Of a DNA stretch of 64,000 nucleotides, positions 32,520-63,623 are shown in pieces. How positions within the stretch are numbered: the stretch's first letter is position 1; every line of letters starts with the position of its first letter. Where the stretch lies: assembly GCF_031769215.1 (NCBI RefSeq), contig NW_026781955.1, positions 1,116,001-1,180,000 of the forward strand, given 5' to 3'. The notes under the pieces were generated by a model that worked only from the letters and a program-made list of their open reading frames with translations, ran no database searches and was not told the DNA's origin. The DNA is from Ylistrum balloti (Eukaryota). The translations under genes and the position numbers were made by a program.

Positions 32520-35032
32520 TTACACACTTTCTGACATTTCCACAGCCCTGTGTATGTTGCTAAGAGAGTCATCAGTTGCCTGTGTTTCTCCACTTCTTTC
32601 GCGTTTCAACTGATTCCTAAAGCGTCGCTCAAACGCCCTCCTCAACGTGCGACCTGTGGAGAATCCACGTTTGTTGAAGATTGCACTATTTCTTCTGCGG
32701 AGGTTAGCTTTCTTATTTGGACAGTCTTGTGAGTGATAAGAAGGTGGATGTGCTGTACTAGAGGCGCTAGATAACGTATCAGTATACATATTAGATGACA
32801 TCTCGTCGTCGTCATCGACATCTTCTTCCTCGTAATCTGCAATGGGATCGTCGTAATCGGGTTCTGGTTCGTTTTCAATGTTGATGACTCGTTGAAGCTC
32901 CATGGTTTTCATGATGATTTCTTGAATTTTATATTTCTCTGTAAACTTTTTACCGCATGACACGTCAGTTATGGAAAGAACATGAAGGATGGTCCCCCAG
33001 CGATGAGAAAGCATACCAATAAATTGAAAAACCAAAATAGTGCCAAATAATCCAAGGAAAAACATACCGAGAGGTTCAAATGTTAAATCCTTTTTCAAAG
33101 GATCGTAATGGGGAATTTTAATGAAAAGTGCAGTGTCCTTAAACTCGTCTTGTAACAGCTGCAACTGCATTGTCAGTGCAATCCATAGAGCACTTGTCAT
33201 GAAAAACCCAAACACAACATTATTCCGGAGGTTCTTTAGGTCAGCTGCGACTTTTTCTTGGTGAATTTTGTCCTCTACAATGGGATGAAGATATCTCTTT
33301 AGAAGTTGTCCCCAAAACAACATTTCTCGCTGGTCCATCCTCTTTATTGGCCCCTCCCCACACACAGAGTCCTGCAGCCATCCAGGATTCTCTGGGTCCT
33401 CATTTTTCATCCACAATGGAGTTTTATCTGTAACATCCGGTTTTGACATGAATGTTTCTGGCTTATGGCTTTGTCGTTCGTTCGAGCTTTCGTGTTTAAG
33501 CACCTTGGTGTCTGCTTTACAGGCATCTGTCATCGCTGAGAACGGCCGAGACCTCGGTGGCATTTTTGTATCACGGCTTTGTCGTAACTCGAATACGAGT
33601 TCTTCCAGAAGTTCGTCGGTTTTGGATTTAGTATCCAGTTTAGGCACTAGAGTTGCTTGGCGTAATTGTCGAAACATATCTGCTGTTTCATTCAAAAAAC
33701 TATCTAGACCTAGCCAACCTAGGATACCTTTCCTTTGACGTTTCAGTCTTTTTTCCTCCAAAGCTTTCTTCTCCTCTAGCACTTCCTCTTTAGACTTCCG
33801 CATCGGAAGTTCTCTTGTTCCCCAGGAAACTATGTGCAGATTGCATAGGTAATATATAGTAAGCACTAGGTATCCCGTTGGTATGCATATGAAATATAAC
33901 GCACCAGGGATGACGCAAGCGAATTCCTCCGGATGCATTAAGGCTGCAACGAAGAAAATGATGACAAGAATCAGAAGAAAGACGACGTTCGGACTGGTCA
34001 ACGATCCATCTATGGCTGTCCCAATGGTCCCTATCAACACAATAGTCATAATTATAGCATAACACGCGCTCATTATTGTTGCTATGGTAACTTGTGTGGT
34101 TGGCTTGGCGTATATGCATAGTACAATGAATGCGATTGGAGGGATCAAAGACAGTGCGTACGATTGGACGACACTTGTCTTGAAAACGACTGAGAACGCC
34201 CCTGCCATCATCAAAAGCACGGTGGCAGGTCCTAACAAGGTGGAGACAAGAAGAAAAAACTGGTAGAGAACATAAGGCGTGCTGATGTTATCGTTCAACC
34301 TGACTGTGTTCTTCCAGTCGCCGAGTAGGTCGATGACATTTGCCAGAGTTGATGGTCCCCACCTACGTCGCTGATTAAAGAATTCTGAAAATGTCTCAGG
34401 CGCGTGAGTCAATGCATCTGCAGCTGCGCAGTAGTCGATTCGATAGCCTTGTTGGAGCAGGAGAGTACTTAGCCAACGATCCTCGCCTACAACAGGATGG
34501 GTAGTACATCATTGGTATAATACAGATTTAGTTGATTCCTTCCTAATCTAATCAATACACTATAATGAGTATTGTTCAATTTCCTTTATAACTTTTCATA
34601 TGTTAATAGGGTCGGACAACAGGCTAGGCTTATATTAAGCCTTTTGAAATCTAGATCATGAATATAACACATAATCCTCATTAACATTATAGCGATCCAA
34701 TATTTTAAAGCAGACGAGGGGAAGTAACTCAAATTTGTTATGGAATATAAATGACTTGTTAAATTAGTATATCTGAAGTATGTTTTGAACATAATTATGC
34801 AGATAATACGAATTTATTGATAGTTTATTGAACATTGATTCAGGTATAAAAGTCCCTGTGTATACACACCTTGACCATCCACCCATTCGGTAGGTATACA
34901 ACTATGTATTTTTATGGTTAATTATAATCTAGTTTTTCCAGATGTAAATTGTTATTTTTATCTATATCGGAGTTGGTCCTCTTACTACAGCATATAGTAA
35001 GTTAAATATAAGTATATATATATATATATATA

Positions 35033-35079
<47 letters not shown>

Positions 35080-38000
35080 AAAACAATGAAAATCGGTCAA
35101 GCAACTCTCTAGGTTACAGCGCACGTGGTCCGTGTTGCATTTTTATATTGCGTTACGATGTTTTTCGGGAAAAACACAAAACGAAAAAAAATTTCAAAGT
35201 TTACTCTGCGTTTCTTTATCCCTTGAGTATATATACAATAGTATACACTACATAATGCCTACCTAGTCCAGTCAGAGTTGAAATGCACTCTTAATAAGGA
35301 TTGTTTCCATCAGGTTACATTTTGGAAATCTTTACAAAAATAAAGTACGAGGAAAGTCACACATCAAATTTATTGGTTTATTGAATGTACACAGTTGCGT
35401 TATGCAAGAGAGTAATATTAATATGTTTCACAACCATTCAGAAGAGTTTCCGAGTCAAAATGGCGATGATCTATTGGTGTTCCTATTTGTGATATGCTAT
35501 GAATCAGTTGTTCTCTATGGTCATTATATAGTGGACATTCAAATAGAAAGTGTTACACTTTTTCATTAATACATCTACAGGCTGCTGATTATTGTTTTCA
35601 TATATACTTGTTAACGATACTATAGGTTTACCCTAATCCCAATAGACTTCTCATTCCCTTATTCAGACAAGGCTACCTTGCTTTCTCTATACAACATTAA
35701 TTCTCAACATGATCACTATTTACCTTTTTTATAATAACCCCCATTACCTTGATCATACTGGACGTACTGGCCCGCTTCTGTCGTACGTATGGCGTAAGTC
35801 CGTGCGACATTATCATCCATGAGTGCTGACCCCCGAAACAAGCTGAAGCACCCTGGGGCACACAGGACACATCCAAATACATGCTCGGTGGCTTTCTGTA
35901 GCCAGTGGCCAATCGCGTACTCAAATTCCTGATACCACATAATGGGACCTTTGAGAGAGATCAAACAGGAATAAGGGTTATTTCTTTTGAACACGTGTCA
36001 ATTAAGTGAAGTAATGTATTAGATTATGTCAACCCGGTATAATGCCATCAAGCGTTGTCAGTATATGCAAAATTGCTTTTACTATTAATCAGAAAGCGGC
36101 AGATTGTACAAAAGACGCAAAGGTGAATGGCACCACTCAGTATAAATCTAAGCATTAGAATCGCAGTTCAGTCAGAACTGAAGTAAGCCATATTATTCTG
36201 TTTCTTGATCCGAACTCGCCATTGATGCTGGTTAAATGATCTTATTTCAAAACACAGCCTTTTTCTTCAACAAATATTTTTTCGGTAGAGATACATGAGC
36301 GGATAATCACCTAGCAACAACGAGTTCTTTTTAAGTTAAATGAATATGAAGCTTGCAACAATAAAAAATTACCAGATCCAACCGGATGTATGCGCCCACA
36401 TGCTGCGCCAACTTTTTTGTTTTTCTTCAGTCTGTCCACCAGTAGTCGCACAGCGTCTGGTTTGAAATCTACGTCACCGTCCAGAGTCAAAATGAAAGTA
36501 TTTTCTGCCTGAAAAAAAATGACAACAAAATCATAATCCAACTCAAATTCAATTCGATAAGATCAGAAAAAAAAGATAAATGGAACGATTTACACAAATA
36601 CTCCTGAAAAAGTACAAGGAGAATAAGATAAATTGTTACGAAAGGGGAAACATCCTCATCGCAGACAAACGCCATGTAAATCAAGATGAACGAAAATATG
36701 TTTTGAATGAGCACCTCTATGCTTTGGTTATTTTTTTTATATAAGTAGATCCCCTCATTATCTAGGATTTTGTTTTGATTCTAAAAAGCAGCGTGTTCCG
36801 CTCACTCGAGCATTAAATCAAATTTTTATTCATTTATTGATAAAAGTTTGGACATGCCTGGAAAATTCATTTTCAGTATTGCACACTTGGCTGTCACATG
36901 TTCAAATAGTGACAATTAGAGTTGTTTTTTCATCACTGTCCTAACTCTTTTTTTGTTAGCTTGACATTAATTGATTGAGATATACAAAAGGGATGCCAAC
37001 AATGAATATGAAGACAGATTTGTTATCATTTTGTGTGTATATCACGTTAAATTTCAAAAAAATATATATTTTTTTTACTTTTTTTAGAAACACATACTAA
37101 AGCATCGTGATTGTCGAGAATCTATTTTTGTTTATGAGTCAATGTATATGTTTATATCATATATCAGAATACCTGGGTATGGACCTCGTCGCTGACGTAG
37201 TTGAATATGACACTGCGCGTAAAATGTGACGATTGTCGACGTTGTCGAAGCTGTGTTTCTGTAAGTTTGACGCGATGAGTGTTGGAGTCGTTGTCTGGTG
37301 TACTCGTTGACCCCAAGACATCACGATGAATTAGGTTTTCAGGTTGTGCTAGGATCCGATATCCAAGTAAATAATACATGTACATTACCTAATGGAATAG
37401 ATAAATACATATATAACCTCTGTATTCGCCATTTATGAAAATCAGATTGATTTATTCTGTTGTGTTCAGCGAGAAACTTTTAAGTCTCATTTTGTAAACC
37501 TAACTGAAATTTTCATCAATATCTGCATATTGTAGACAGCAGACAGCCGATTGTTCTAAACAATCTGAAATCACATACATAAATCCTCCTACCGTTTCGA
37601 TAGTCATTTAAAGAAAAACTAATAATTTCCTAAGCGGTAAGCTATTGTACACGTGCATGGTATTTCTTACCTGTGACCAGCGTTTCTTGTGGCGTATCTT
37701 GTGTTTATCCTTCAGATGGACGACGAGGCGGGTGCCTCCAGGTAAACGCCAAGTCATCCGTCCTCCATAAGGGGTCGGTGTGCGCACAGGCGGGGCCAGG
37801 GTCATTTGACGCTCGTGGACGGAACTGGGAGACACAAAATAACGTATACCATTCAGACCTCAATCAACAGTGTGCGTATACTTATTATTTTCTATTTATA
37901 CTAATTCTAATAGTCATTTTATATCATTCTCCAGGATAATGTAAGATAATTAATTTTGGGACAAATTTATTTTCATTGATTTTGTGGGTGCTCTTAACCC

Positions 38001-41000
38001 ACGAATTAATATATCCACGAACAGTTATAATTAGTTTAAGCTGATGTATTAGTTATATTCATCCACACAATCAAGTGTTCATGAAACAATATCTTTTGTA
38101 GAACCACGAAAATTACGCCCCGTTTAAGCTTTTGATTTAAACTATCAAGTAGAGAATTGATTTAGGAAGGAAGTTTAGTTTATCGGATATCTCCACAATA
38201 CGAGCAAAGGAAATGTCTCGCAAAGCCGCTCTTTAAACGATGGTCAAGGTGTGTAAATAAAGTACAGTCGAACCTCATTATTTCGACGTGTGAAATTTGG
38301 CCAGGAACGACGAAAATTTCGAATTAAAAAGGATTTTAGAGTTATATGAATTTGATAAAAAGGAGGTTCGAATGTATATTTAAACATGCAACATCCTTAT
38401 TTTAAAAAACACACCAAAAAGTATATGGTACATATCTGGAATTCCAATTATGCTTCTGAAAACAAGAACAAAAACCTAGTGAGGCAAATCTGCCATCAGC
38501 CATCAGCAACTTCCGTTAGTACGTGACAATTTGCTATCAATAAGAAACTTGTTTTTAGTACAAAAAATCAAACAAGTTTTAGGGTGTACATTTAAAGGTG
38601 TATGTTTTCACACTAACCTGATAGCGTCATCAATACAATCCATGAGCTCCGCTACAAAGCTGTTCGGTATTAGTTTGTCGTCATCAGAGAGCTCCATTGC
38701 GTCATCGAAAAACACATGTGCTGTAAGATTGTACAAAAGACACAAGTCAATAGCACATTTTTAGATACAACAGAGCCAAACAATGAATTAAGTTGCATCA
38801 TCCATCCGTTTCGTCCTCTTAGGACTTGTCAGTGATGTTAATGGTCTCCTGTTTGACTGAGTAAAATCAAAAGTGACCGAAAAATATGTATCGAAATTGT
38901 GATAAGCAAAACAAACAAACAAAAAACAAAACAAAAACAAACAAAAAAAAAAAAAAACCCAAACAAAAAACAGTTGTATGAAATGGTGTGATGATTCGAC
39001 ACCTACAATACAATTAACAGCTTACCCTCAAATTCATAGTAATCCGGATCTCTTATCCCGTAAAATTTTTGAGCCAGGAAACGCGCACTGTGGTCAATAT
39101 CCATCCTAAAAACCAAGCAATTAATTCGTTGTTAACTAACAATTGCTATTACCGACGAAATCCGCCGCTGTTTCAGCATTAGAGAATCAATGATGACCTT
39201 TCTGTTTAAAGACTACAGAGACTATAAAGAGTCTGAGAAACTCATTGAGGTTTCCTTCTTGGATGTTTTATAAACGTTAAAGGACCTTAAAACAGTTTGA
39301 TAAGAATTGTCTTGACTCTAGGATGAATCTATATCAATGATACTTTGATTTATCAGTACAGCACATTTACCTAAATAAAGATTTCAGAAGCTGTGTCATT
39401 TCACACCGCGTTTCGTGCCACATAGTTGCGCATGCGTATATTTGTGGCACAACATCGTCAGCCCTATGAACTTCCTCGTCATCAGTTAGTGTGGACGCGT
39501 CATCATCAGAACTGAAAAGCGCAGAGTCGCGATCATTGGTTCGCCGACGTAGTATCAGCGACTGGTCGGTGAGAATGCCACATCGGATTGGCATTACAAA
39601 CAGCCTGTAACAGAAACGAGATTTAAAGGAGAAAAATATCAACACAAGATAAGTCACTTCCCGTAAATTCATATATTTTCTTAGGGCTCAATTTTCAAAA
39701 AATTGCTTTATCGTATTGATTTCTTGAATAGATATAGCTCAATAATTCTATCAGCACAAACTCGTGGATTAAGTGTACCCAAGAAATCAATAAAAAAAAC
39801 CCCACGAAAATTGATGATTTTACTGTTCAGAAGTCCAATCATTTTGTAAATTATGCAGGTTTTCTCATTGTATGATATAAATATTCCTTTGAAATGACAT
39901 ATAAAGGATGTATAATAGCTTAGTAAGAGCTTAGATGCTTAATATAAATATAGATTAAAAACCAAACCTGTCTATCTTGGCCATCCTGCCATTGCGGGGG
40001 AACCAGATGTGTGACGTCAGAATGATTTGTGACACCCAGAGAACTCCTAGCCACAACAGGTGGAACATTCGGATTTCTCCGGCCATTTCCGGACACAACC
40101 ATATATACAGATAGGAGGGGATGAATTTGGAATAGCATTGGACGATGATGATTCCAAGTGTTAAAGGTGTTGCCAAGAACAAAGGCAATGCGAACCCTAT
40201 AACCTGCATACATAGTTTACAAGCAAGACTGCCAAAGTAAGACAACACTGCGCTGCACAAGAGCTGAAGATACAGCGGGCCGTAACGTTCAAAGTTCCTC
40301 TTAACAGATTCCGGAAGTTGTAAATTGTAGTTGACGTCGCTACTTCCGTTGATGGTTGGAGAAGGATTTTCAATAGATGGTGAGGTCGATGGTACAGGGA
40401 GAGGTCTCGGACGAAATTTTGGTGTTCGACTTTTCAGGTTTGCATTTGTCAAATTGAGAACAGCACTCACACCGTTTAAACCGATCTGATCAGATATTGC
40501 TCTTTTCACAAGAGGAATTTTACGGCTCCCTCCCACAGGCGGCGCTCTTATCGGTGGTTTCGACGTTACAGTCACACCAGAGGCGACTGCTGCTACTGTC
40601 GTAGTGTGCCCTATCCTTGTGCCACTTGGATTTGATCCGGAAGTGGAAAATTCTATATTGAATGAAAAGCCCGGAAGTAAAAGAGCAGCGAACAGTAGCG
40701 TCCAGCCAGTCTTCCAAATTCCAACAAAAATGTACAGTCTTTCCCGGACAGAATTTAGTCGCCGTTTCCATTGAAGAAATGGTATATTTAACGTGCAAAT
40801 TGATAAATCACTTTCTACAAAATTTTCCCAATATGATACGGAAATGAATACCAAAGCCACGGGTATTTCCCACATATAGCGATTTTCAAACATAGGTGCA
40901 GGCCTTCCTACCGTATGTAGAATATCTGGGTCATAAATAACGTCTCTTTGAAGTTGGTCCCTTTCTGCTTCTTTTAAAGGGTTACTAAACATAGTAGATG

Positions 41001-44000
41001 CTGCGAGATTGCACAACTGTATAACGAAAGCGAGGCCGTTGATAAAGGTCAAAGTTAATCTCTTCACGGTTGGTCTTGATTTGTCCGTTGCTATGGTAAT
41101 TGTTTTTAAAAATGCAGGAACTGTACAAATTCCACAGAATTGAAGTAATCCTCGAGCCATGTCCATCCTTGGAAGGATGTGAAATACCATGAGACACAGT
41201 CCAAAAGAGTGAAGGAGCTCCATAAACAAAGTCTGGCAACATAAACAGGTTAAAAGGATGAGAAATCAAGCCGTTTTACAGATTTGTTAATTCACAGCTA
41301 AATATGATTCAATTTCATGTTCTAATTATGAATATATGACCAATTGGTTTGTTAGGCTACTTCATCTTGATTAATAAAGTAAGTTTAGTTGCGTTTTCCC
41401 TCCAATGAACAATCAGAGATATACTGCAAAATTATGTATATTTTTGAGGCTATAATTTTGATGAGTTATTGATTTTGGGGGGTTGGTGGTGTTTGTTTGT
41501 TTGTTTGTTTTGGTTTTGGTTTTTTGTTTTTTTTTGTTTTGTTTTTTGTGTGTGCGTTTTATTCTATCTTGCTTTAGTTGACTCTTTAATTCGTGGATAA
41601 ATAAAACTCTAAAATCAACTAATAAATAAATATTGTTTCTAACGAGTTCGCTGTTTACGTTTAACGATAAAAACGAAATAAATCAAAATAAAAGACCAGA
41701 AAACTAATGGTTTGCTAGTATAGCTACTTCCGTTTTAATTTAAATGACCTTAAAAATGAAAAGACAATAAGTTCTTTGTAAAAAGTTATATGGTAAGTCA
41801 AGTGTATGATATGAACTGCGAGGTACTTTATTTTATGCATTAAATACTTACAATGACGATAGTTTTAAAGGATGGCCAAGCGTTACTGCCAAACAGTGAC
41901 TTTGCTGAAAAGCTGAACATCCATATGATGTAAGGGAAACAGATCGTAATGACTAGCATAGTGTTTGTGGGGCTATTCGACTCTCTCAGTGCCTTCTTGT
42001 CCTGTAAACACGCATATAACACAAAAATGGAATACTGTATAAGTCATATATTTTCGCGGATTTCAATTTTCGTGATTAATAAAAAAGAAACTACAATTTC
42101 CTTGACCATTGATATTATGGATAAATAAAGTTGAATTAATCACTATAAGTTCGTGGACAAATAAATTCGTGGAGTGCCCGCGAAACAATGAAAGTAATTC
42201 GCTCACGAAAATTAATGCAGTATCATGCGGAATATTTTGATATCACTGGAAAATTTCAAAATAAAATAACTTTGATAGAACTATCATACTTATCTCTGGC
42301 GATACATTTTTTATCGCTTGTGTATCTAAGTACCCAAGAATATATTGTAAAAATCGTATTACGAAGTTTATTTGAATTCAGATATGACGGTAAATTCATT
42401 TTGAAGCTAATACGTTTCCACTAGAACCCTCAATTGCTGTTTTTTATACTTGTATAATAATTTGATTAATTTCTAATGATGTTGACGACATAATTCATAA
42501 TGAAACGTGATAGGATCTGTCAGATGCTGTTCTTTAACACCTAACCGGAATTATTCTCAGACAAAATATATTTATTCATTTTATTATGTATGCCATCAGT
42601 TAATATTGTTGACTACAGCTGTCCAAACATTGAAAACCTTGTACATGAAAGGATCGCGAACCTTTGTACAGAAATGGATTGCGAACCTTTGTAAAGGAAT
42701 GGATCGCGAACCGTTGTACATTAAATGATCGCGAACCTTTGTACAGAAATGGATAGCGAACCGTTGTACGTTAATTGATCGCGAACCTTTATACAGGAAT
42801 GGATCGAGAACCATTGTACAGAAATAGATCGCTAACCGTTGTACATTAATTGATTGCGAACCTTTATACAAGAATGGATCGCGAACCTTTGTACAGGAAT
42901 GGATCGCGTACTTTGTACAGGAATGGTTCGCGAACCTTTGTACAGAAATGGATCGCGAACCTTTGTACAGAAATGGATCGCGAACCATTGTACATTAATT
43001 GATCACGAACCTTGTACATGAATGGATCGCGAACCATTGTACATTAACTGATCGCGAACCTTTGTATATGAATGGATGAAATTAAATATAAATAGGAGAA
43101 TGATAGAACAAGAAATGTACCTTCTATTATATGTGAAATCTGCAACAATTTACCTTGAGAATACTTGACGACATGAGAAGAATACAAAGTTTACTGACGA
43201 CGGCTGATCCCAGAACCACACAAAAGAACAAGACATAACAGAAAATCTTAAATGCTCGCAGAAATGGCCGGAAGGTATCGCTGGTTGACACGCGCTCACG
43301 CGGGATCATCTGAAATCTATCCCACAGACGCCTGTAAAAATGTGAAAGAGGATACTTCAGAACAATGCTGGTGTCTGTGAATAATACAGTTGTATCACAA
43401 CTAAAACAGCGGATTGTCCCGTAGTCCATGAACGATAAAGTACCAAACTTCTCTTGCCGAAAAGAGAAAAAGAAAGAATTGAGTACTCACATGTCCAATA
43501 GCGAGTCATCCTTTCTTGGCATCTTGATGCGGACGTGACTACTTTTCTGAAAAATAAAACAGATACATGTAAACACAAAAAAAACATTAGAAAGATCAAT
43601 CACGTAATGCCACAATGTGATATCACGAACCTTTGTATCACACATCAAATATGGTTTTGTTTTGTAAGTACGTAAAAACGATTTGAATTTCTACAATAGT
43701 AAAATAAGGTTGATGTTTGTTTAGAAAGCTAATTAAAAATATCAGCAATTCTCTAGCAATTTTTTTACTTACTGTTAGAATTGCGTGTTTAAAAGTTTAA
43801 CTTTCAGTCGGGACATTTCATGTTTTAGAGATTTTTTTAACCTCTCAGTTGGGACAATACGCGTTTTACTTTCCAGTTTAGAAAGAACACATAGTCTTCC
43901 TCACTTAGGCTGATAATCATCACTGAGCCCAATCACTGAGGCCAAAATTATCGGTAGTGTCAAGTGAGACATTTGGAAGAAAAGCAGGTTTTTATGGAAA

Positions 44001-47000
44001 AAAGAAAAACGATAGATTCTAAATTTCGTCTTACTTTTGAAAACACCGGTGGCGGTGTATTGCTGTAGACAGGTGTGGGTAAAGAGACATCTGAGGTCAC
44101 GTGATCCTGTTGCTGCATCCATTCAGCCACTCTAGTGTGCGAGGATGCTGATGACGTCAAGGTATTGTTTTGTTTAGATGACGATGAATCGGCCGAGCGG
44201 ACATCTACAATTGCCTCCAATATTGGTCTTCGTTTGGTATCAATTGACACTGATGTCGCATCGTCAAGATCAACGATATCGTTATCCATCATATACGACA
44301 CATGCGCAGACGCCATCATCTGTTTTCTTTCGGCAACGATTTCCTGTAGAACGGGGCCATGCCAATGTCTAAGAAGAACCTAAAATATAAACCTTTGTAT
44401 ACATTCTGCAAGTTTCATATTCAAAGACAATGTCTGTAAATAGGGAAAGAAATCCCATAACAGATATTTGTGCCCATCGTCGCTTGATCTTTAATAGTTG
44501 TGTGTAAGTTTGGTTCCTTTGCCCTTTGGCTAGTGAAAAATTGTTGCAGTATTGGTGTCAACATCCAAGATGGCCTCCTCTCAGCCATTTTCCTAAGTTG
44601 ATATAATGGCTGATTGATTGACCATTGCTTATGCCAACCCATTGACAGGATGACAATCTAATTGATATGACACCACCTTTTCCTTCTTTCTGATCTATCT
44701 GTTGTTATAATGACATCATGAACTTACCTTGTCCAGTCAATGCCCTACCTGTTGATATTGTGACATCATGAACTCACCTTGTCCCTGTCAATGCCCTACC
44801 CGTTGATATTATGACATCATCAACTCACCTTGTCCCTTTCAATGCCCTACACGTTGTTATCATGACATCATGAACTTACCTTGTCCCTGTCAATGCCCTA
44901 CCCGTTGATATTATGACATCATCAACTTACCTTGTCCCTGTCAATGCCCTACCCGTTGTTATTATGACATCATGAACTCACCTTGTACCTGTCAATGCCC
45001 TACCCGTTGATATTATGACATCATGAACTCACCTTGTACCTGTCAATGCCCTACCCGTTGATATTATGACATCATGAACTCACCTTGTACCTGTCAATGC
45101 CCTACCCGTTGTTATTATGACATCATGAACTCACCTTGCCTTTCGCTATGGCGTATCCATTAATTCCAGCATCAGAAAGTATCCTCTCGCAAGCATCTTC
45201 TGATGACCCAACGGACACGTTCGGAGTAAAGGAAATGTCTCGAAATCTGGAAATAGTGACATAATGATATCAATTATAGTAGCTCCCTTTTCAAGAATAC
45301 ATTCCGGTCACGCAAAAAGTCACGAGGGACATTCAGCTAAAACACTGCATACATCAAGTCGCACGAGACAGATATACAACTGCCTTTCTTTCAATGCCTT
45401 GCCACGTTACACATTAGTAGACACGTGTGGATCAGATCACGTGGACACACACTTATTTCCGCTTCAAATATTTTATTGCAATGCTTGCCATTTACATCAC
45501 ACGTGCCATTGTTCTTCCCACAATTCCTTACATGAGAAATCGACTCACAGTCATTCTTACAATTCATCACTCGGGACATCGACTCCCACACTGCATCAGA
45601 TGGGATTTCCACAATCCTTCCCACAATGCATTACACGTGATTTCAACTCAATGTCTTTTCCACAGTTATTCTTTCGGGATATCGACTCTAGTCCTTCCCA
45701 CACGACAACGCACGGGAGTGCGGCCCACGACCAAAAATGCTTCTCATACTACATCACACGGGACAATGACTCACATGCCCTCCCACACTACATCATACGG
45801 GACAGCGGCCCACATGTCTTCCCACACTACATCACACAGGACAGCGGCCCGCATGTCTTCCCACACTACATCACACAGGACAGCGGCCCACATATCTTCC
45901 CACATTACATCACACGGGACAGCGGCCCACATATCTTCCCACATTACATCACACGGGACAGCGGCCCACATATCTTCCCACACTACAAGCACACGGGATA
46001 GATGCCCGCAGTTCTTCCCACATTACATCATGCGGGGCATTTCAGCTATTAATGACACCAAGCAAACCCTAAAAAACATTAATTCACCGTTCTATTTGAA
46101 ATATAGTTCTTCTGACAAGTCTTGCATATCTACCCTCTGGTTGTTACCCCTCCGTATCCCTTCAATATCTACCGAGGATGTCAAGCGAACGAGCATATCC
46201 ACGAATAAGGTGGTAGAGCACCATTTCAGCAAACAATACTAATATGATTACTGTCCACAATGTTTATTATAGCGCTACATACCTGACTTAATGTCTTCTG
46301 TATAATTATATTATGAAAAGTATATATCAGCTGTCGCTAGCTCGTGAAAGTGCAAACAATGAAGGGCAACAACGGTCACCTGGGTCGTCATCCACAAAAC
46401 GATTTTAAAATTTAATCTGGTGACAGTAAATATTTTATTTTAGCGACATAAGAGCTGACATTGCAAACCGGGTTTACTTTTTTCTAAATAATGATCGTCG
46501 GATATTTAAAGTATTTAAAGTACTAAAAAGGAACGGGCCAGTCTTAGAAATAAGTTTACATTACTTTCTTAGAATGTATTTAAGTTGGGTGGTGAACAAA
46601 CGATATATCACCCAAAGAAATATGTGTGGCATTGTAGTTTTAGATAGTCATGAACAATGCTAGATATTTCAGCAAAAGTTCTCACTATACATGTGATACC
46701 ATAGTATTACAGACAGAGATCAGAGATGAAATATATTATGTGAAATCCTGTTCCGGGGGGTGTTCAAGTGGACATGCATGGGATACATTTAAGCCTCTAG
46801 ATGTCAATAATACATTAATTTGATAACTTTGTCCTTTCGTCTTGACCCGACATATATTGAAATAATATTGAGACTTTTAAGGATGATCTCTATGTCCATG
46901 CTTATCTCGAAAACGATTCCAAAATAGTCATCCTTCATCGTGATATAGAATCACAAAAATAGAGATACCACATACGAATAAAAAAAAAGCCAGCCTCACG

Positions 47001-50000
47001 AAAACACGAAAGTGTGGAGGTAATCTATTGATGTTACTGTCAGTTCAGGGAATGCTTATCAAATCCATCAGCCAATGACACAGCGGTTACCTAGTATGAA
47101 GTGGATAAACCAAATATGAGCAGCAGAGCAAAAAGCTAAAACAGAAGCTTCAAAGATAGTATCCCCGTAGTTTATTAGTAAGAGATTTAATCTCCAAATT
47201 GTTATAAATACTTGGTCACACATCACAGAACAACGTAGAGGGGGCTTGTATTATAGAAGATTTTGATATACAAAATAAACTCTTTCAGGATACAAAAATA
47301 CTTCTAAGTGTACATTTATATATGAAATAATCCCGTCCATGCATAACATTAAACCGTGCACGATGGAGAACATTATGCAGCATACGGTACGAGCTAGGAT
47401 ACTTTGAATATTTCATAAATTATAAAACGTTCAACATCTCGCTCTGCAATTCAATTTAGAGGCTGCAGATTGTAAACTTGTTTCGATATAGGAAACTGAC
47501 AAGACAGTAAAATATAAATAAGAAATTACCATTCGTGCGATGCCGTGTTGTCAATGTATTTAAATAATAATTTCAAATTTTCATTAATTCATACGCAAAA
47601 CTTTTTCAACAAAGTTTTCAACACGAGCCACACACGCTGTCACAAATATATTTGTTCCCCATTTAACTGAAATGATGAGATAAACAGTAGCGATGATAAA
47701 CAGTTCATCCATAGTTTTATGATGCTATCTATGTTCAATCTTTTCCTTTAAATATAGACAACTGACAACCTGTGCCAAATTATATTCAAAGTATGTTACT
47801 GTACAGATGTATAATTTCTGTAAAAATTAAAAAAAAAAAAAAAAAAAGCAAAACTGCGTGTAAATAAAATGGAATTGATCATGTACGCTTCCAATAGAGA
47901 CCAAACTGATAGCGTCATTGTAATCATTACAAAACACATATACAGTTCTAGACATTTTCACTTTTTCTTATTGAGCATGATACTGATTTTTTTCTTCTTT
48001 TCCTGTTTTGATATGGTTAAATTTTTCGCGGTTCTATAAAAATTCTATGCTTTTTCACTTTCTTTTTAATTGATAATGGGTAATAATACTTTTTTAAAAT
48101 ATCTATCCCTTTTGATTTGCTCGGACGTTATGAAAAGAGTTATGGTTAAAACACCACAGAAACAACACATTTTTGTTACAGAAATCTTTTTAACAAATCA
48201 ACTTGATTACGTTTACTCTTCTTTCTCAATGTCATTTCACAAAAGAACTTAACAACATTGAACATGTTGATGTGCCAGAAGAACAATCATATGTATCGAT
48301 GGTTGTGTATTTTTTATTTGCGAAATATTCAGCTAGATTTTTTCTGCAAAGCTTTTCAAGTTTCAAATTACCTAGCATCACTGACGAGTTCTTACTGTAT
48401 GGTGCAGCTGTAAAACTTGTGCCCAATCCTGTTGCTACTTATGTGCGATAAAATATGTTTAAATCAGAAAGTTTGGTTCATTCTTTGGTTCTGTAACAAC
48501 TTTGTATAAAGTATCTACCTCTAAATTTCTAGTGAAAGGTATTAATGACGCTGGTGTCTTTTTTACTAACTTGCATCTATAGTTGTTTAAACTATACAGT
48601 GATTTGTCAACCATTTCGGGTGCTTTAATTAACAGTCAGTTATCATTAAAATTCGTTTTTGTGAAAAGAATAGTTTGTTTCTTTACAGGAACTCGTCGTT
48701 TCGAGACGGCACGAAACTATATAAAATATAAAATTAGCGATATATACGATTAAAATGGCGCAGAGAGACATGCGTTCATGTGGAAAGGATTGTAATGACA
48801 AAAGAAACAAATAACAATTATTTAAGATGGCAAATTTCATTCTGCCTTGTGAGACCTATTTATATTTTGACCTCACACGAGTCAGAAACAACCCTGTGCC
48901 TATAGACGGCGGGGTTTATACACGAGAGTTCTCCTGATCCTGTGCTCCACAACGAGGGTTGGAAACAGATGAAGTGTCAGAAAAGACCTTAATAAAAGTT
49001 AATCATTCTCGAAAAACATATGTGTCGTATGTAATATTGTTAAATATCATTACAATTACGACATGATCTTTTTAGATTAACACTATATCATAAACGAAAA
49101 GGTGATTTAGTTTTAGTTTGTCAGTAAAGAAAAATATGTTTGGCAGCGTTGAGATAATGTAACGGATATAACCAAACAGACTACTTTCCAGAAAAAGGTT
49201 ATTATGTAAATAATTAATGCTAAAAATCGAGATTTTCAGGTTGCGCCGTTTGACTAATAATCTGAGGCAAACCATTTTTTTTCTATCGCAAGTCTTATAA
49301 TGCTCTATGTTTCATGTTCTATTTTCACAATTTGATGCAATTCTCTTAATAAAAATAGATTGTTCAGATTAATTAAGATTTATTTATGAACGAAATCAAA
49401 AGTTCACGAAATTTGTAAACAAAAAGAAATTAAATTAAAAAAAATAAATAGACACACACGAACATTGAGCGGCAACAAAACATATGCTTTGGACTATGAT
49501 AGATTGTAAAAACTTGTGTTCAATTTTTTGTATATATATATACAATAAAATATGACTAAATTCAAATATAATTTAACACTATTTCATACATTAATTTCTA
49601 CAAAACAGATATTTCAAAATAAAAATGAAAATCAAGTTCACGTTCAAGTTCTTAAATAACACCAATCCCGATTATCCCCGAACGTCTATCCTAAAGGAAC
49701 GGGCAATGTTTGCCGTTATTTGTCTACATATAATTACATTTGTAAGTTTCGAAGGTCGACTTAATATCTTACCGTTATCCATTTATACAGCTAAGCTTAG
49801 TTTGTTATAATTACTAACAATATCTTTGCTAAATATTAGTATAATTTTCGATATACTATTTTTATAGCTTTTACTTTTTCATTTTAAATTTTAACACTAA
49901 TGCGATCTGACTCCATTCTCAATATGCTAAAAAATCAGATTTTACAGTAGTCGTTTACCTACTTAACATTCAAAAATATTTGTACGAGCATATATATATA

Positions 50001-53000
50001 TATATATATATATTCACTTTTTAACGTTTTTATTCACAATGCCTACATTATCGGTATGGAATTTATACACAAATTATTCGGAATATATCGTTTACTAGAT
50101 AATAGATCGTCTGCCTTACCGATAAATATTTATTGGTTATCCAATTATTAAATACTGTAAAATCATGAATATTCATGGACTCCATTTCCATGGTTGCAAA
50201 AAAAAAAAAGAAACACTTAATGATCATTCTTATTTTAAAAAGTTGGTGCACATGAATACGTGTATTAAGAGTATCCACGAAACTACGAAATTTTAAAAAT
50301 AAACCCGCTTCTACACACACTCAACGAAAATGATTCTCGGGTATTTCAAATATAAAAGTGATATAGACCTAGTGTATCCGAATTTATTCAACTACTTACA
50401 GTCCACGATTTCAATTAGTTAAATAATCCTAAAATCATTTAAAAATAATTTTACAAGTGCGTTTGCTTGTAGTCGTATTTAAACCTTGTTTATTTTGAAA
50501 ATAAATATATTGGTTGAATAGGATGCCCTTTTAATGAAATATTGCGAACAATATTACCCACTTTATATACATGTGTACTTGTACTTATATCATTTAAGAA
50601 GATTGCAACGAAAGTTGTCTATTAAATGTTCATATAAAACAGCTTTTGAAAAGTTTCAAATAATGCAGAACAATAAATAAATTTCTAGGAACAAGTTCTC
50701 ATTTAACTTGACTATAAACATCAGTTTTCTTTACTTTTTTCCATTGATTTTTTTACTGATTCTTAAACCATTATTAATCATTCTCTGTTAAGTACGTAAT
50801 CATCTTTATCTTTCACTTCCGTCAAGTCGTTTTTATGCATTGGTAATCAACATATTTTATAATTTTGGAATATTCTGTTAACAACACCTAACATGTTTTA
50901 GATAAATAATTTAATAAATTAATAAATCAACTGATTCAAATTAAGAAATGAGTGATTAGGAAGCCCCTCGCATGCCGTCCAGAGTAAACAGAGTTTAGTG
51001 TTTAGCCCAACCACTTCAGTACAGACGGGTCCTTTTTCTCAGCTTCCTCTCTTTTCATTCATATCTTTATTTCCTCCATAATTGAAGAGTACAAAAACAT
51101 AGTAAACAAGCAGTGATTTATAAAGTGGGTGTACAAAAAGAAATCAGGGTGAAATTGTAATAGAAAAAAAAGAAAGAAAATGCATCAAAGAATATAAGAG
51201 TTGTTTACATAATAATGATCAATAGAGGAGTACACAAATGAAAAAAAAAATCTTATATCAAAAGTATGGGAAAATAAAGACACTGCGTAAATTGCAAAGC
51301 ATTATAACTGTGAAAAGCGTAGCTGTATTAAAGCCTCATTGAAATGTTAATTCGGACACTTTTATAATAAATACAAAACATTCCAATCTAAATCATTGTA
51401 ATTCTACAACATTAGAGAATAACAATTACAGTTCTATAGGAACGGCCCCTAGCAGGGTTGTAATAAAACGTTAACGTTCCAAATTGTCAACAATTATATA
51501 TACAGATACCGCGTAATCATTAACAATTTTGGTGAAAAATTATCCTTTAGATCTACAATAATGGGGTGGCGACAATCGATGCAGCAGTGTGCTAAAGCAT
51601 CTTCACAGCAGCTAGCACATCTTAAACATAATAATTCACATTCTGGATTAATTGTCCAGAACTTTGCCATTTTCTGACATACCGTACCAAAACGAACATT
51701 AAGTGAGCGCCAGAGAAAAAATAGAGTGGCGAAGGTACAAGCGTAGTTTGGAGAATTTTGAATCTACTGAAGTCATTGGTAGCATTCAAACGAGATTGCC
51801 AATTGCTCTCTTCCTTTCTCAAAACTGTCGTTTTAACTATTTGTTTCCAATGAGACTTCATCGGGAACATACCCGATTTTATAAAGTCATATATATAATT
51901 TTGTAGATCGTACTTATGTAAAATAAACCATGTATTTGGGATAACACCACTTGATAATGCAATAAACGTAGTACAAATATTTGCTTAACACCACAATGTG
52001 AAGTCAAATTACATAGCGACCCCAGAAAAAATAGTTTACATTGGTCAAACCTAGCAGATATGGAAGGGAAACCTAACATTCCTAAGCAGATGTCAGATCT
52101 AGTACGTAACGGAAAACACTCAATTAATTTGACACAGAGATTTATAATCTTTTCTAAACGACTCCAATCTGAATTAGAGAGAATAAACCATAGTTCATAG
52201 CTGTAAAGTCCATGTGGTTAAATGATAAATGTATACAGCCTTAAACCAATTAAAGGGGTGATAATATCTCCTATAAGGTTAGATCCGAGAAAACCAAAAC
52301 ATAAACTTCGGAACTTATGAACTACGTCGTCTATATTAGGACATCCTAATCTTTATTTATCAATACAAAACCTTCCTAAAAGTCGTCTTTTCAGAAGAGA
52401 TGTAAATAACTTAACCATTTAACTTATCAAAGTTATGTCCGTGTAATATTTTGTGTTGTTGACATCACCAACATTGTTGTGGAAACTACACATTACGCGA
52501 ACCAAATTTTGGGAAAAAATCATGAATCAGTGTTGCGATTATTCTCTAAAATAATAATAAAAATGATAAATGCGTCACGTGTCAGTTTTTGATTGGAAAT
52601 ATGCATGAACTTCGTCTTCAGTAAATATACAAATACCGTGGCGTCGCTTTATCCAACAAATCTACACAATTACTATCAAAGGTTGATGTTTACTGTTTTT
52701 ATGATGTCGTGAGTGAAAAGAATTCGATGATAGATCAAATGTCTCATAACAGCTGGCCTCTCTCCAACATACCGATAGCAAAATTAAAAACATGTTCAAT
52801 GAAAATAAAAATTCGCTTATTTAAACACTTCTTTAGATATATTTGAGTAAGTTAGTAATATTCTTGACGTACCGAAATACAGCTGTTTTCCGCCACTGCT
52901 AAATATTGCAAATAATATGTAGACAGGTGCAGAATATAGTAGTATACATTCCTTCTTGAGAAAATAAAAAATGACGTTTTTTCTTGCATATTTGAAGCCT

Positions 53001-56000
53001 AACATGCTCGTTCATTATAATCGCGTACCTTTGGACGAAGTCTTCGACATTCATGCGAATAGAAAAGTCTTTTCTCTTGAATGGATTGATATCGATTCCA
53101 AAACGTTCACTAGATCTGGATGTTAAAGTCCCAGTTTCTGAACCGTCACCATGGTAACTGCTTCGATCAGAACTAGGCTTCATCAACCTTTAAAAATAAA
53201 TTACATAAAAAAATAGATAACATTAAAAGACAAAAAACATTGAAAACAAAAAAGAAAAAAAAACAAAGAACAAACATTAAAAATCTTAAACTCAGCACAT
53301 TTATCAAAACTCATAAAAATCATCATGAAATGCTTGTATTAGAAATCATTCAAATGACACATGCGCACAAGATTTTGAAACCGGAAGTTACGTTATAGTT
53401 TTTTTTTATCTGTGGATTGATACTCAGTATATATATCACCAAAATACGTAAAATAAGATGAAAATACAATTGGCTGGCTTATCTTTTCTACATACGTATG
53501 GAAGTACATGTTGCCTCAGGGGTCAGACACTGGTCAATTTTATTCGGACACGACATTATTACCATGTACAGTATCCAGACCACTGACAGTTGTGTACAAA
53601 CACCAACCTTCCTGTGATATCGTCCTATGTTATATTCGTCACTCTCAACAGTGAAATGTACATTATTGGAATCCGGCGTCCGTCGTCTTATTAATTCTTA
53701 CAATAACTAACAGTTCATAATAGAAAAGCGTTTTGTAATCTTGGAAAACATTTACAATCAAATTTATCATTACGTTCAACATTTGAAGCTTAATGTGTGT
53801 TGTTTAATGAGCATGCATCCTCTGACAATTAGCTCCCGTAAAATGATATTGTCCGGCACTATTCGAATAATAAGTGTCCTTTTATTATGCTTCTGTACTG
53901 GTAGGTGTATTCAGCTATCCACCAGTCTGGGTTTTTTTCTACTCGTCTTGTACAATGTAAGATTTTTTTTTTATATAATATCTTAATGTTTTGTATGTGT
54001 TATAATAACCTTTATTGTACTAGTACACTGAATGTTTTTTGTATTTAACTTTTAAACTGATAAGTTGTAAGACTTTAAGTAAATAAACATTCGGAAGGTA
54101 GCACATGTGGATAAGTCATTGACATCTAGTACAATGGAAGCTAAATCCTATATTTACATGTATTGTTAATCTAAATTTAACACTTACAGACAGCAAGCGG
54201 GATTTAGACTAAATATTCTCTCTAGAATGGGGATATTCGGAAATCGTTTCCTTATTCTGGTCCGGAAAATATGGTGTTATGAACACCATTATTTAGTCGG
54301 TTGATTATTCGAAGAATATGCACAAGATATGGTGGTCCATGATTATGATAACTGTGAAGATTCTGACTTTGTATTTAAACGTAATTTGATATTACGAAAC
54401 TCATGAATAAATAAATAAATAAATAAATAAATATAATAAAATAACAACAAATAAATAGATAAATAAATAAACAGAAATTAGATGGATATACAATATAAGA
54501 AATATTTATCATTGCTTTACATGGGAAAAGAGGTGTGTCCAATTTATATAGCATACACCCTTAATACACACGAGACGTGAACAGACGTCCCATCCACGTT
54601 TAAGGCATTACAGATGGCCTAAGTATGATGACCACTAGCCATATTGTATTATCTGATGTAGATTACGTACGTTAATTGAAATCGACAATAGAAAGATTAC
54701 CTGGAAATCCATTGTTTAGAGTCGGAAACTCTGTGAAAAAGTCCATTACGTGATTTCTGAAAGACAAAACATATTAACTTTATTGTTTGCATCCAAGGTA
54801 AATGGGGGAAATGAAGAAAGAACTCTAATCATGTTTTTTGTTCTTCAAGGAAAAAATAGTCAGCAAAACTATATTGTGACATAAATTGTTCACGTTCAAC
54901 TAACAAAAAAATTTGATTTGTAAATTCAACAGTTCAATTTGTTTGTTGGTTTTTAATTTTTATTTATTTAGTTTTTTTTTTAATTTAAAAAAATTGTGAA
55001 CATATTTATTTATTTATTCATTTATAAATTTATTTATTCTATCTTCATGCTGGGTGTACGAAGATCTGTGTGTCGGACTTTGTACAGTGACGGAAGTCTT
55101 TTCTTACTGCTGGCTTTATATGAAGTGTCCGGCTGACTTCAGACATTGACCGGAAGGCTTACCTTATTGCTGGATTTAGAAGCGGTGTCCAGCTGACTTT
55201 GGACATTAACCGGAAGTCTTACCTTACTGCTGACTTTAGGATTGGTGTCCAGCTTATTTTAGACATTGACAGGAAGTCTTACCTTACTGCTGATTTTAGG
55301 ACTGGTGTCCAGCTTACTTTAGACATTGACCGGAAGTCTTACATTACTGCTGATTTTAGGATTGGTGTCCAGCTTTCTTTAGACATTGACCGGAAGTCTA
55401 ACATTACTGCTGATTCTAGAAGCGGTGTCCAGCTGACAATGGACATTGACCGCAAGTCTTACCTTAATGCTGACTTTAGAAGCGGTGTGCAGCTGACTTT
55501 AAACATTGACCGGAAGTCTTACCTTACTGCTGGTTTTAGAAGCGGTGTCCAGCTGACTTTGGACGCTTACTGGTCGAATTTCAGCTGCAGCAACATCACT
55601 TGAAGTAAAGCAGTGAAAATTAACTAAAAAACTGAATAAAGAACTCAAAAGGGAAAGATGACAATTCGTGTGTGTGTTTTTTACCCTCATAAATTTATGA
55701 CTTCAGTAAACTTTGACATCGTTTGCGTGTTTCATATACACGTTTTTCTTAAGGTTTATGTTTAAAAGTAACTAATTATTTTCCCGTTAATTAGTTTAGT
55801 AAAAACGCTTACAGGTAAATTATCTGCCTGTTTGATATATTGTGTTAGAGTGCGGACAGCAGCCCTGAGGCTATCTGACTAATAACTGACAAATGCCTGT
55901 TCTGTCAAGGTAGGTCACGCGATTTTTATCTTACAGAGCATGTGTCCATTCACTTAACAGGAAACCAAAAGTTTCTTGTAATGGTCAGTATGGTCTATTG

Positions 56001-57030
56001 TGGTCAGATATCACACACTGATAAATATTTTGTTTCTTTTAATGACCGCTGGTCAGTTCTGACCAAACCAATAGGATGAAGATTTCGGAACTATTTGTTG
56101 TCGAATTTTTTCCGACTTCAGTTTTAATCTAGCCAAGATTATCCAAACAACATATTTAAACTGTGATTTGTATCAAGGGAAATAAGTCAAACTAGAATCA
56201 TCAGAAATGGATACCCGATGTAGTTTAATCACGACAAATCGTACTGAATGGTAAACCAATTTTATAAGGTGTTAGGTAATAGTTGATTGAGAAGAAAACC
56301 TGATGATTTCCTTGTTGTAAAATCTTGGTGTTGAAGTTTCATCTAGATCTTCATTTAATTCTTCGTCCGATGTCGCAATACTGGCACAAATTTCCTCCAA
56401 ACTTTTACGCATTTCCTCAAAGTTTTCGGACCTAAGACAGACAAGGATTATAAAAGTCTACATTTTTTTTCAAAATGTACACGTTTTCGAAATTAATTGA
56501 TTATCATGAAAAAATAACACAAACTTTCAATATTGAAAAGTTGGCTGAGAAGAATTTTTTTTAAAAATCCATTAGATAAACGTATAAAAGACACGAAACC
56601 TTCATTTAATATTTCCAGTTCGCATTTTCTGATTAAATGACCGCTTACAAATTGCGTCTGAAACGAAAGACATTTACACTTATTTCCATGTCAGTTTTCA
56701 TTTTAATGTGCCATAAAGAAGAAGAAAATAATAGTTTGTTTTAAAAGTGATGAGAATAACATTAAAATTATACTGTAGCATTGGTGTGTTATCATTTTGG
56801 TCTAAAACGCCCTCAATACATGGAATTTATCAACAACGCGATGAAATACTTAGTCCAGTAGGTGTCACCAAGCCAGAAAACAAATTCGTTTACCTGAACG
56901 TGCTCCCAAAGTCAGACGTTTGGAGAGTGTCCGTGTCTTCACTGAAATCGTTATTACGTGACGGTGCGTTGTCATGGTTACCAGATTTCTTGTCATCATC
57001 GTCTTTTAAGTCTGGTAGTTGAAAAAGTTC
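32520..57030 (-). CDS. CHS: Chitin synthase (GT2, animal type) with a vestigial myosin converter segment and an acidic N-terminus; spliced
   Basis: Hand-traced exons in transcription order, all phase-compatible: 56894-57030, 56300-56431, 55523-55598, 54701-54756, 53029-53187, 45135-45246, 44035-44379, 43491-43546, 43154-43331, 41852-42001, 39968-41232, 39371-39604, 39026-39105, 38618-38720, 37671-37824, 37173-37388, 36373-36508, 35748-35948, 32520-34486 (TAA). Motifs: CATMWHE, HVFFDDA, KIRHKKRWSQ, MYMYYLLG, LTLDGDVDF, VGAACGRIHP, WYQEFEYAIGHWLQKATEH, GCVLCAPGCFSLFR, QYDQGEDRW, QRRRW, SWGTRE and a C-terminal coiled coil. Exons from 44379 downward are very secure. The five exons above 53 kb rest mainly on splice signals plus frame continuity, and the 56300 donor AG|GTTTTC is weak. 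Confidence 0.92.
35013..35077. repeat. Compound (TA)n(TG)n microsatellite
   Basis: About 10 TA units followed by about 21 TG units. Confidence 0.95.
38263..38376. mobile_element. Short MITE with 14-bp TIRs including TA termini
   Basis: 5' tacagtcgaacctc versus 3' gaggttcgaatgta: 13/14 inverted match. Confidence 0.7.
42033..42222. mobile_element. MITE (same family as 19116-19304)
   Basis: Starts tactgtataagtcatatattttcgcgg and ends ctcacgaaaattaatgcagta. Confidence 0.55.
42634..43075. repeat. 25-bp minisatellite (gcgaacctttgtacagaaatggatc), about 17-18 copies
   Basis: 25-bp period with two interspersed monomer variants (…cagaaatggat… and …cattaattgat…). Confidence 0.92.
44701..45138. repeat. 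51-bp minisatellite whose unit contains the chitin synthase splice donor
   Basis: tgacatcat starts at 44711, 44761, 44812, 44863, 44914, 44965, 45016, 45067 and 45118; each unit reads CAAG|GT(G/A)AGT on the - strand. Confidence 0.93.
45380..46035. repeat. 39-bp minisatellite (acatcacacgggacagcggcccacatatcttcccacatt) with a decayed left flank
   Basis: Near-identical copies at about 45790-46030; increasingly diverged copies toward 45380. Confidence 0.85.
54406..54470. repeat. (AAAT)n microsatellite, imperfect
   Basis: Run of ataaataaataa… with interruptions. Confidence 0.8.
55081..55565. repeat. 60-bp minisatellite made of the exon 3' end plus intron start of chitin synthase exon 55523-55598
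   Basis: Eight consecutive 60-nt lines (55081-55560) are in register; the last unit overlaps the coding exon and its donor AAG|GTAAGA. Confidence 0.93.
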
Positions 57031-60000: not shown

Positions 60001-60368
60001 CAGCAGGCAAGCACATGAACATTAAACACATTAAGATCTTATGTTTTCAAATCATTTCTTTTTATTTACTTTTTAAAATACAGATCGAAATTTGATGTTG
60101 TCTTGGTATTTACTAGTCACGATGTACATCTTTGTCATTCTTTAATGAACATCTTTCGAAGTCACCAATCTCACCCCTTTTCATGAGACTTTCTATTCCA
60201 AGTTGTTATAGCAAATACATGAACAATCACACATTGAATTTAGTGCATTAGGTTTATGTTCTAAAAAGAAATATTTTGCTGGCACTCTTTCAAAGCAGCA
60301 TCACTACAATATAAAATACGGTACGGTATCTTAGGATTACGGAATAATGAGGAGTGGAGGACAATGAA

Positions 60369-62461: not shown

Positions 62462-62673
62462 TAATCAAACTGCAACAATAAAAAGGTTTTCCAACTCTAT
62501 AGTATCTCTGCCTAGATGTCATGGGATTTCCATTGAAAGATTGAATTTTTGATAAAACTGTCGATACGACATATATCATAAATACTCCTATCGCCTATGT
62601 AAGATATGACGCCTCAATGCGGAAATTTTATTTACGCAAGCAACCAAAGATGTCTGCCTGACGGATTTGATAA

Positions 62674-63093: not shown

Positions 63094-63482
63094 TACCTTT
63101 CAAATAAAACGTTATCGCATATCTGAAACTACCTTTAAAAACTACTCGATTTCTAAGAACTATCCTGGCACCAGTGTGATTCATGATCTCATGACGAATA
63201 CTATGGTGATGGCCGTAACGTCATAGCAATATTATGACGTCATAATCCCTAAAACTAATAATGTGTTATTATTAATTGACTAATGTCAATGGTTTGTTAA
63301 TTTACCCCAAAACTAAATATGAATTCTTAATATTTCTTCACTAGCAATGTCAATATCGGTATAGAACTGCGTTTAAGTAACTTTTTAATGCCACCTGTAG
63401 ATATTTTAAGTCGTACTCAGGTTTATGTTGCAGGTATATATCTCTGTACAGAGTTCAGTTTGATCTTCTTTCTTGACATTAC

Positions 63483-63623
63483 CTGAATCTGAAACACTGT
63501 GAGGTCCACTATCTCCTGTCTGCAGTAATCTGTTTCTTCTTGTACAAACATACCGCCATTAATTCCGAAAAAGAAATCACTTCCATTTGTACTTTCACAG
63601 TCCGAATCATGATGACCATCCAT
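63483..63623 (-). CDS. Candidate first coding exon of the chitin synthase (MDGHHDSDCESTNGSDFFFGINGG...VFQIQ)
   Basis: ATG at 63623 in the context gctATGG, with an in-frame TGA upstream. The 141-nt frame ends at CAG|GTAATG in phase 0, matching the phase-0 acceptor at 57030, and the composition resembles the following acidic exons. An alternative donor GGCG|GTATGT at about 63554 and an overlapping ORF in another frame make this uncertain. Confidence 0.45.

Follow-up and report, generated by a model that had tools for sequence, protein, structure and literature searches.

Probable decay of a myosin motor into a non-motor domain in a scallop chitin synthase

The window analysed here, 64,000 nucleotides of the Ylistrum balloti genome (positions 1,116,001 to 1,180,000 of contig NW_026781955.1), holds the scallop ortholog of a lophotrochozoan myosin-chitin synthase (myosin-CHS). 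Such proteins are believed to link chitin deposition with the actin cytoskeleton while the shell forms. The gene extends from about 63623 to 32523 and is transcribed from high to low coordinates; all its exons lie on the minus strand. Considered as a whole, the evidence is probably best explained by decay of the motor to a non-motor cytoplasmic domain, with translation from the ATG of a first exon named E0. Eight exons (E0, U5, U4, U2, U1, A, B and C) were joined into one continuous open reading frame (ORF) of 386 codons, from the E0 ATG to the end of exon C, with AG/GT splice sites throughout.

Exon correspondence with the Mytilus motor

The 'chitin synthase chs-2-like' protein of Mytilus galloprovincialis (P0155, 2363 aa) falls in the same orthogroup and displayed 68% identity to the scallop protein over the synthase part. 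Eight exons were mapped in it between the switch II exon and the first exon after the converter, both included, as many as in scallop between E0 and C, and intron phases were identical at five to six of the seven junctions. Junctions of like phase by position were E0/U5, U4/U2, U2/U1, U1/A, A/B and B/C, while U5/U4 differed. The split arginine codons at U1/A and A/B and the phase-0 junction B/C recur in Mytilus, and intron positions were shared over the region leading from the head to the synthase. At the U1/A junction, QWISR/LMKPS in scallop stands for PWFVR/CIKPN in Mytilus, with the same split codon. The RHWHG start of the lever and the RVAEWMQQ linker were also present in both.

The one-for-one match of exons and phases indicates that the 170 residues upstream of the converter descend from motor exons whose sequence was largely overwritten. 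Judged in this way from gene structure, the motor-derived remnant measures about 270 residues and not 70. Recognisable pieces were limited to three: the relay-helix start VQEETDY, the helix preceding FVRCIKPN, and the converter with the start of the lever helix. P0155 possesses a full head detected by Pfam PF00063, whereas no front half was detectable in scallop, where switch II is destroyed, the L50 region unrecognisable and the SH1/SH2 region decayed. The HYAG segment is gone. The position of the switch II motif DIxGFE reads PNSGHG instead of DMSGFE and lies upstream of the E0 methionine, with a TGA eight codons further up. In place of the SH2/SH1 region and FVRCIKPN, the scallop gene displays WISR/LMKPSS followed by a Ser/Gly-rich stretch with a proline, for which the predicted local confidence (pLDDT) was below 50.

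Exons upstream of the converter

E0 (63483..63623) is a putative first coding exon of 47 codons, with its ATG at 63623 and the donor CAG/gtaatg, and is read here as the relic of the switch II and relay-start exon. A permissive tblastn search with the Mytilus ortholog matched 63644-63507 to residues 381-425 of P0155 (E 0.054), MFVQEETDY being identical to Mytilus. The context of the ATG and the donor were both good, and E0 ends in phase 0, as U5 needs. Differences within VQEET[DE]Y among three lineages were almost only synonymous, which indicates that the motif was translated throughout. Use of E0 in the mRNA is presumed, and its ATG is most likely the start codon.

When the Ylistrum gene was compared with the Argopecten locus (L002), the introns could not be aligned, but four additional alignable blocks emerged on the upstream side of exon A. 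U5 (56894..57030; L002:2288-2421) starts in phase 0, ends in phase 2 and displayed a dN/dS of 0.16. U4 (SENFEEMRKSLEEICAS...; 56300..56431) is 82% identical in nucleotides to L002:2935-3052, with mostly synonymous changes and a dN/dS of 0.19. U2 (55523..55598; dN/dS 0.25) has phases 2 to 0, as does the exon for loop 2 in Mytilus (residues 537-558). U1, KSRNGLFHRVSDSKQWIS(R) (54701..54756; L002:4458-4513; dN/dS 0.06), agrees exactly in length and in phases with RSLSDLMNKMSDAKPWFV(R), its counterpart among the Mytilus exons, and gave tblastn matches to P0155 and to Lottia P0010. Each block is bounded by AG/GT sites and all four are joined in frame in both species. Because of this shared frame and an overall dN/dS of 0.17 with saturated synonymous sites (pS 0.6-0.75), U5 to U1 were considered coding exons.

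Smith-Waterman comparison with the Mytilus motor, evaluated by shuffling, yielded z scores of 5.2 for E0 (0/500) and 4.5 for U1 (1/500); U5, U4 and U2 were without significant similarity to that motor (z -0.5 for U5, by position the exon for residues 444-497). A preceding sequence-only reading of the window had recognised no more of the motor than the converter, of about 70 residues, and had called the roughly 170 residues upstream of it not myosin-like. The first statement gives way to the five additional in-frame exons and their remnant of about 270 residues. The second still describes U5, U4 and U2, which are unrecognisable; it does not extend to E0 and U1, which are similar to the motor, nor to the ancestry of the region, for which exon order and phases argue for motor exons.

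The converter region

Exon A (53029..53187; aag/G...AG/gtacgc), an extended version of the first exon previously proposed, carries LMKPSS in place of CIKPN. It encodes a decayed SH2/SH1-helix region, predicted to be disordered, then the first converter strand and helix (KDFSIRMNVEDFVQR). Exon B (45135..45246; cag/A...AAG/gtgagt) supplies the converter core (FRDISF...ACERILSDAGINGYAIAKGK) and matched Mytilus with an E value of 5.6e-06. Exon C (44035..44379; tag/G.../gtaaga) encodes the last converter strand and the start of the lever helix (VLLRHWHGPVLQEIVAERKQ), followed by a linker with a conserved RVAEWMQQQ. The arginine codon at A/B is split after two nucleotides (phase 2) and B/C is in phase 0, as at the Mytilus junctions R627 and K664/I665. 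The three peptides that the sequence-only reading had spliced together were exact minus-strand translations of 53078-53028, 45242-45135 and 44379-44329, with canonical splice sites and the two phases it had given.

Similarity of these exons to the end of a myosin head, also proposed in that reading, was borne out by one profile and not by the other. For exons A, B and C taken singly, and likewise for the N-termini of scallop models, the Pfam profile PF00063 (Myosin_head) gave no match up to an E value of 10, while the same region scored 1.5e-22 in Mytilus and 2.2e-27 in Gigantopelta. A lineage-specific hidden Markov model (HMM), built from seven myosin-CHS heads with the closest relative omitted, was significant nonetheless: exons A and B alone reached 26 bits (E 1e-10, profile positions 653-711) and the spliced N-terminus from U1 to C reached 45 bits (E 1.5e-16, positions 592-737). 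A sequence search of PDB found nothing with exon B alone; with the Argopecten N-terminus, the best match was a myosin converter, at an E value of only 0.14.

In an AlphaFold model of the Argopecten equivalent, whose input alignment held genuine myosin-CHS sequences, residues 41-110 were predicted with pLDDT values of 84-94 (means of 10-residue blocks) as a strand, two helices, a hairpin and a long helix, that is, a confident converter-like fold followed by a lever helix. All of the best 50 Foldseek matches of this model in PDB were myosin motor domains, with about 80 aligned residues and an rmsd of 2.6-3.9 Å among the top 41. From these comparisons, the converter similarity is judged real, but only as measured against relatives.

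Selective constraint on the region was strong, with dN/dS values between Ylistrum and Argopecten of 0.07 for A-B, the converter, and 0.13 for C; the former fits the retained function that had been suggested for this piece. Exon C is also intact in Mizuhopecten (L001:4376-4727), though outside the gene model of that species. Three elements that directly precede the first transmembrane segment are conserved, namely the converter, the lever helix in its first turns (VLLRHWHGPVLQEI) and the linker with RVAEWMQQ.

Synthase part and orthology

The remaining exons (32523..43549), identified by Pfam and by mapping of the RefSeq protein, encode the transmembrane N-domain and the catalytic chitin synthase domain up to the stop. 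Large downstream exons matched ChitinSynthase_IV_N and Chitin_synth_2, with Pfam E values of 3.8e-14 and 1.7e-09. The RefSeq protein 'chitin synthase chs-2-like [Ylistrum balloti]' (P0151, 1797 aa) displayed 98-100% identity to the window from 45971 to the stop near 32523. Its motifs EDR, QRRRW and SWGTRE, located at residues 1144, 1181 and 1363 in parts that are 100% identical to the window, together with the Chitin_synth_2 profile, are those of an active family-2 chitin synthase. By these features the synthase is intact and the enzyme most likely an active one.

A tree of the synthase part, obtained in a quick search, placed the three scallop genes as sisters to Mytilus (SH-aLRT 99), in a clade that also holds Pinctada, Saccostrea, Dreissena, gastropods (including Lottia P0010, with motor) and Leptochiton (P0161, with motor). 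As scallops are nested among motor-bearing genes, the tree argues for secondary decay in an ortholog and not for a separate derived paralog, as had been proposed from the sequence.

The ortholog from Pinctada imbricata (P0153, 1954 aa) begins in the same relic exon (MD...VQEETEY) and keeps the converter and RHWH. Its first exon, collinear with scallop E0 and U5, is their best match in the whole Pinctada locus; a TAG stands in frame after the ancestral acceptor and ahead of the methionine. Pinctada differs from scallop in that the equivalents of E0, U5 and early U4 are fused into one exon of 459 nt, and in that the genomic equivalents of U1 and A are far more myosin-like (PWFVR, CLTPN, LLEVSRMRCDGYAIKM). 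On this comparison, the decayed motor state is common to scallops and Pinctada.

The deposited Pinctada model skips two motor-derived exons that are well preserved, L003:14740-14964 and 16341-16550 (...SESRPWFVR and CLTPN...LLEVSRMRCDGYAIKM..., respectively), and uses an unrelated exon at about 11986-12110; it is probably mis-spliced.

Loss of the front half and alternative readings

In agreement with the sequence-only reading, a six-frame search of the window, which ends 377 bp upstream of E0, revealed no exon with a signature of ATPase or actin binding, be it the P-loop GESGAGKT, NSSRFGK/switch I or an intact DIxGFE. The lineage HMM recovered 14 motor exons in the Mytilus locus, where the P-loop exon had an E value of 3e-52; with the same profile, nothing was found for positions below 590 in the window between 53 and 64 kb or in the Argopecten flank, which begins 2.3 kb upstream of U5, and no motor exon appeared in the 10 kb that precede the Pinctada ortholog's first coding exon. 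The RefSeq models of the three scallops displayed no Pfam Myosin_head. Upstream of the E0 ATG, TGA and TAA are encountered in frame at 15 and 19 codons, and the only in-frame candidate acceptor is pyrimidine-poor. In DNA contigs from four other individuals, 63363-63942 was free of variants among those listed, and indel polymorphisms of 1-3 nt were found at 63943-63951, which argue against coding sequence just upstream. These observations suggest, indirectly, that Ylistrum has lost the front half entirely.

Candidate motor sequences were discarded at several places. The match of 63988-63923 to the NFHIFY region (E 46) was attributed to chance, as it has no usable donor and contains indel polymorphisms. 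The segment 63678-63634 and an overlapping ORF of 97 codons (63512-63802) are in other frames. An ORF at 56275-56457, matched to switch II at E 5.4, is now read as exon U4.

Several observations weigh against a decayed motor translated from E0. Neither the Ylistrum nor the Argopecten RefSeq model includes E0 to U1, and a search for RNA runs holding this locus found only DNA runs. No E0 homolog was found in the Argopecten locus, with its start at 2.3 kb upstream of U5. The donor of U4 is weak in Ylistrum (CAG/gttttc), being the sole GT ahead of a stop, and the homology of U5, U4 and U2 to motor exons is a matter of position and phase only. The myosin-CHS sequences in the alignment used for the AlphaFold model bias the predicted structure towards their own fold. 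With the window ending so close to E0, the absence of a P-loop exon from it proves little; residues upstream of the E0 methionine still resemble SGFENL, and caaag/T is a possible phase-2 acceptor.

From this last point arises the alternative that survives best, although we regard it as unlikely, namely that the head is complete, intact or decayed, with P-loop and switch I exons located beyond the window and spliced onto E0 via caaag/T into a full-length pseudo-motor. The codons before the E0 methionine read GPNSGHGNL and can still be aligned to ILDMSGFENL, the contigs of other individuals run at least 3.4 kb past the window unbroken, and only 377 bp upstream of E0 are covered by the window itself. 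This arrangement is nevertheless opposed by the in-frame TGA and TAA and poor acceptor context just upstream of E0, by loss of the aspartate and glutamate of switch II and by the frame-breaking nature of the indel polymorphisms at 63943-63951, and further by Pinctada, with a stop inside the ancestral exon and 10 kb of upstream sequence free of motor exons, and by the lack of Myosin_head in all three scallop models.

A stricter version of the initial proposal, which we hold to be decidedly improbable, would have the protein begin at or near exon A, with only the converter of roughly 70 residues derived from myosin and the upstream blocks representing 5' untranslated region or unrelated sequence. 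Current gene models lend it some credit: the Argopecten model (P0152) begins at the methionine of exon A, and that of Ylistrum (P0151) skips even exon A. The first exon of the latter (MWAAVPCDVMWEDMW...; 45774..45971), absent from the Argopecten model, lies in the A-B intron within a 39-bp tandem array (7.4 copies, 45740-46030) that is open in both strands and supplies the start codon and first 66 residues; this start is probably either an artefact of gene prediction or an alternative one. Longer scallop models with the converter were sought in a region search, which returned only the two known ones. The 5' ends of the Ylistrum, Argopecten and Mizuhopecten models, the last of which (P0001) begins after exon C, appear truncated or mis-started, and none of the three starts is considered trustworthy. 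U5, U4 and U2 are moreover unlike any myosin, and Pfam sees nothing in the region. The low dN/dS of U5 to U1 at saturated synonymous sites is nonetheless unlike that of an untranslated region, and in both species these exons join exon A without a change of frame; U1 and A together reproduce PWFVR/CIKPN with its split codon, and exon number and phases match Mytilus.

A decaying pseudogene, of the N-terminal region or of the whole gene, would accord with the lost motor motifs and with the repeat arrays inserted beside two donors, but is very improbable for a gene whose ORF is open across about 1965 codons, whose catalytic motifs are intact, whose N-terminal exons each display a dN/dS of 0.06-0.25 and whose orthologs are 83-89% conserved across three scallops.

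Repeats, conserved intron block and neighbouring sequences

Two tandem arrays, at 55076-55564 (60 bp, 8.2 copies) and 44701-45138 (51 bp, 8.6 copies), start at the 3' ends of exons U2 and B, respectively, and repeat the last codons and the 5' splice site into the downstream intron. Read-through into the first unit of the U2 array meets a stop. Contig depth increased about 100-fold at 59801-60200 and 62601-63200 in all four DNA runs, with many joints; these segments are high-copy repeats inside the E0-U5 intron.

The U4-U2 intron contains a block of about 215 bp (56055-55840) with about 67% identity (blastn) to Argopecten L002:3410-3622, the rest of the intron being unaligned. It displays repeated TGACC/GGTCA motifs, including the palindrome TGACCAGCGGTCA. 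The block was rejected as an exon on account of stops in all frames in both species; it gave no Rfam match and could be an ancient repeat or have a regulatory function.

A gene for an animal haem peroxidase / dual oxidase (DUOX) has exons at about 6000-13400 on the plus strand, convergent with the chitin synthase. The same neighbour was encountered 3' of the chitin synthase ortholog in Mizuhopecten and Argopecten, which indicates conserved synteny.

The RefSeq model of the motor-bearing ortholog from Mytilus edulis (P0154, 1800 aa) begins only at MNKMSDAKPWFVRCIKPN, within the exon equivalent to U1; either the model is truncated, or a short isoform without most of the head occurs naturally.

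Proposed course and significance

Under the reading favoured here, decay of the motor to a non-motor cytoplasmic domain would have affected the scallop lineage and Pinctada. The eight exons that once encoded the rear 45% of the motor (switch II exon through converter) are all present and in frame and would be translated, with the L50/HYAG/loop-2 part overwritten, the SH1/SH2 helices predicted disordered and switch II destroyed. A start at the E0 ATG would leave the P-loop and switch I half out of the protein. Such a head would be devoid of ATPase and of nucleotide-regulated actin binding, and the protein would be unable to hydrolyse ATP or to move on actin. The converter, lever stub and RVAEWMQQ linker may then form a module beside the first transmembrane helices, with a docking or structural role as its most likely task.

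It is conceivable, although we consider it doubtful, that the decayed head is a selected 'pseudo-motor' module, composed of the converter, lever stub and VQEETDY, which predates the split of scallops and pearl oysters and has taken on a new role. If so, the module might dock the synthase onto those chitin synthase paralogs that bear a motor, or onto other partners in the cytoskeleton, and would have its fungal counterpart in the myosin-like domain of class VII chitin synthases, which is short and motif-less yet essential.

The locus is a natural record, exon by exon, of what a head can discard and what it keeps when motor activity is abandoned. Strong constraint acts on the converter, on the start of the lever and on a short relay motif; nucleotide- and actin-binding parts were lost or overwritten. 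This retention points to a motor-independent role of the converter region beside the membrane domain of the synthase.

Comparison with known systems

Among bivalves, the classic examples of a myosin-chitin synthase are Atrina Ar-CS1 and Mytilus Mg-CS1 (Weiss et al. 2006, cited after PMC3942024). The heads of lophotrochozoan chitin synthases were placed near myosin classes III and XVI in PMC3942024, in line with the class III-like character first proposed for the scallop exons. Secondary loss of the motor was already reported by Zakrzewski et al. (2014, PMC3942024) for groups B and C of these synthases, which, in the account given there of the two groups, share with the scallop gene the condition of a motor-less synthase within a motor-bearing clade. 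As far as the scoring described in PMC3942024 is concerned, a motor domain is either present or lost, whereas the loss in scallop is partial, with about 270 motor-derived residues, a foldable converter among them, kept under purifying selection.

Fungal class VII chitin synthases are described as carrying a shortened myosin-like domain without P-loop, switch I/II and SH1 helix (PMC7389182), also termed a 'short MMD' (PMC6813208), and the domain of CsmB is essential for function according to the title of a paper cited in this literature (PMC7389182/PMC6813208). In fungi the fusion originated separately and involved another class of myosin (PMC3942024), and the likeness noted here lies in the missing motifs. 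Within these bounds, both systems, as portrayed in those sources, display a chitin synthase fused to a shortened, motif-less myosin-like domain. The scallop gene is a partial and selectively maintained instance of a known domain loss, and its novelty is modest.

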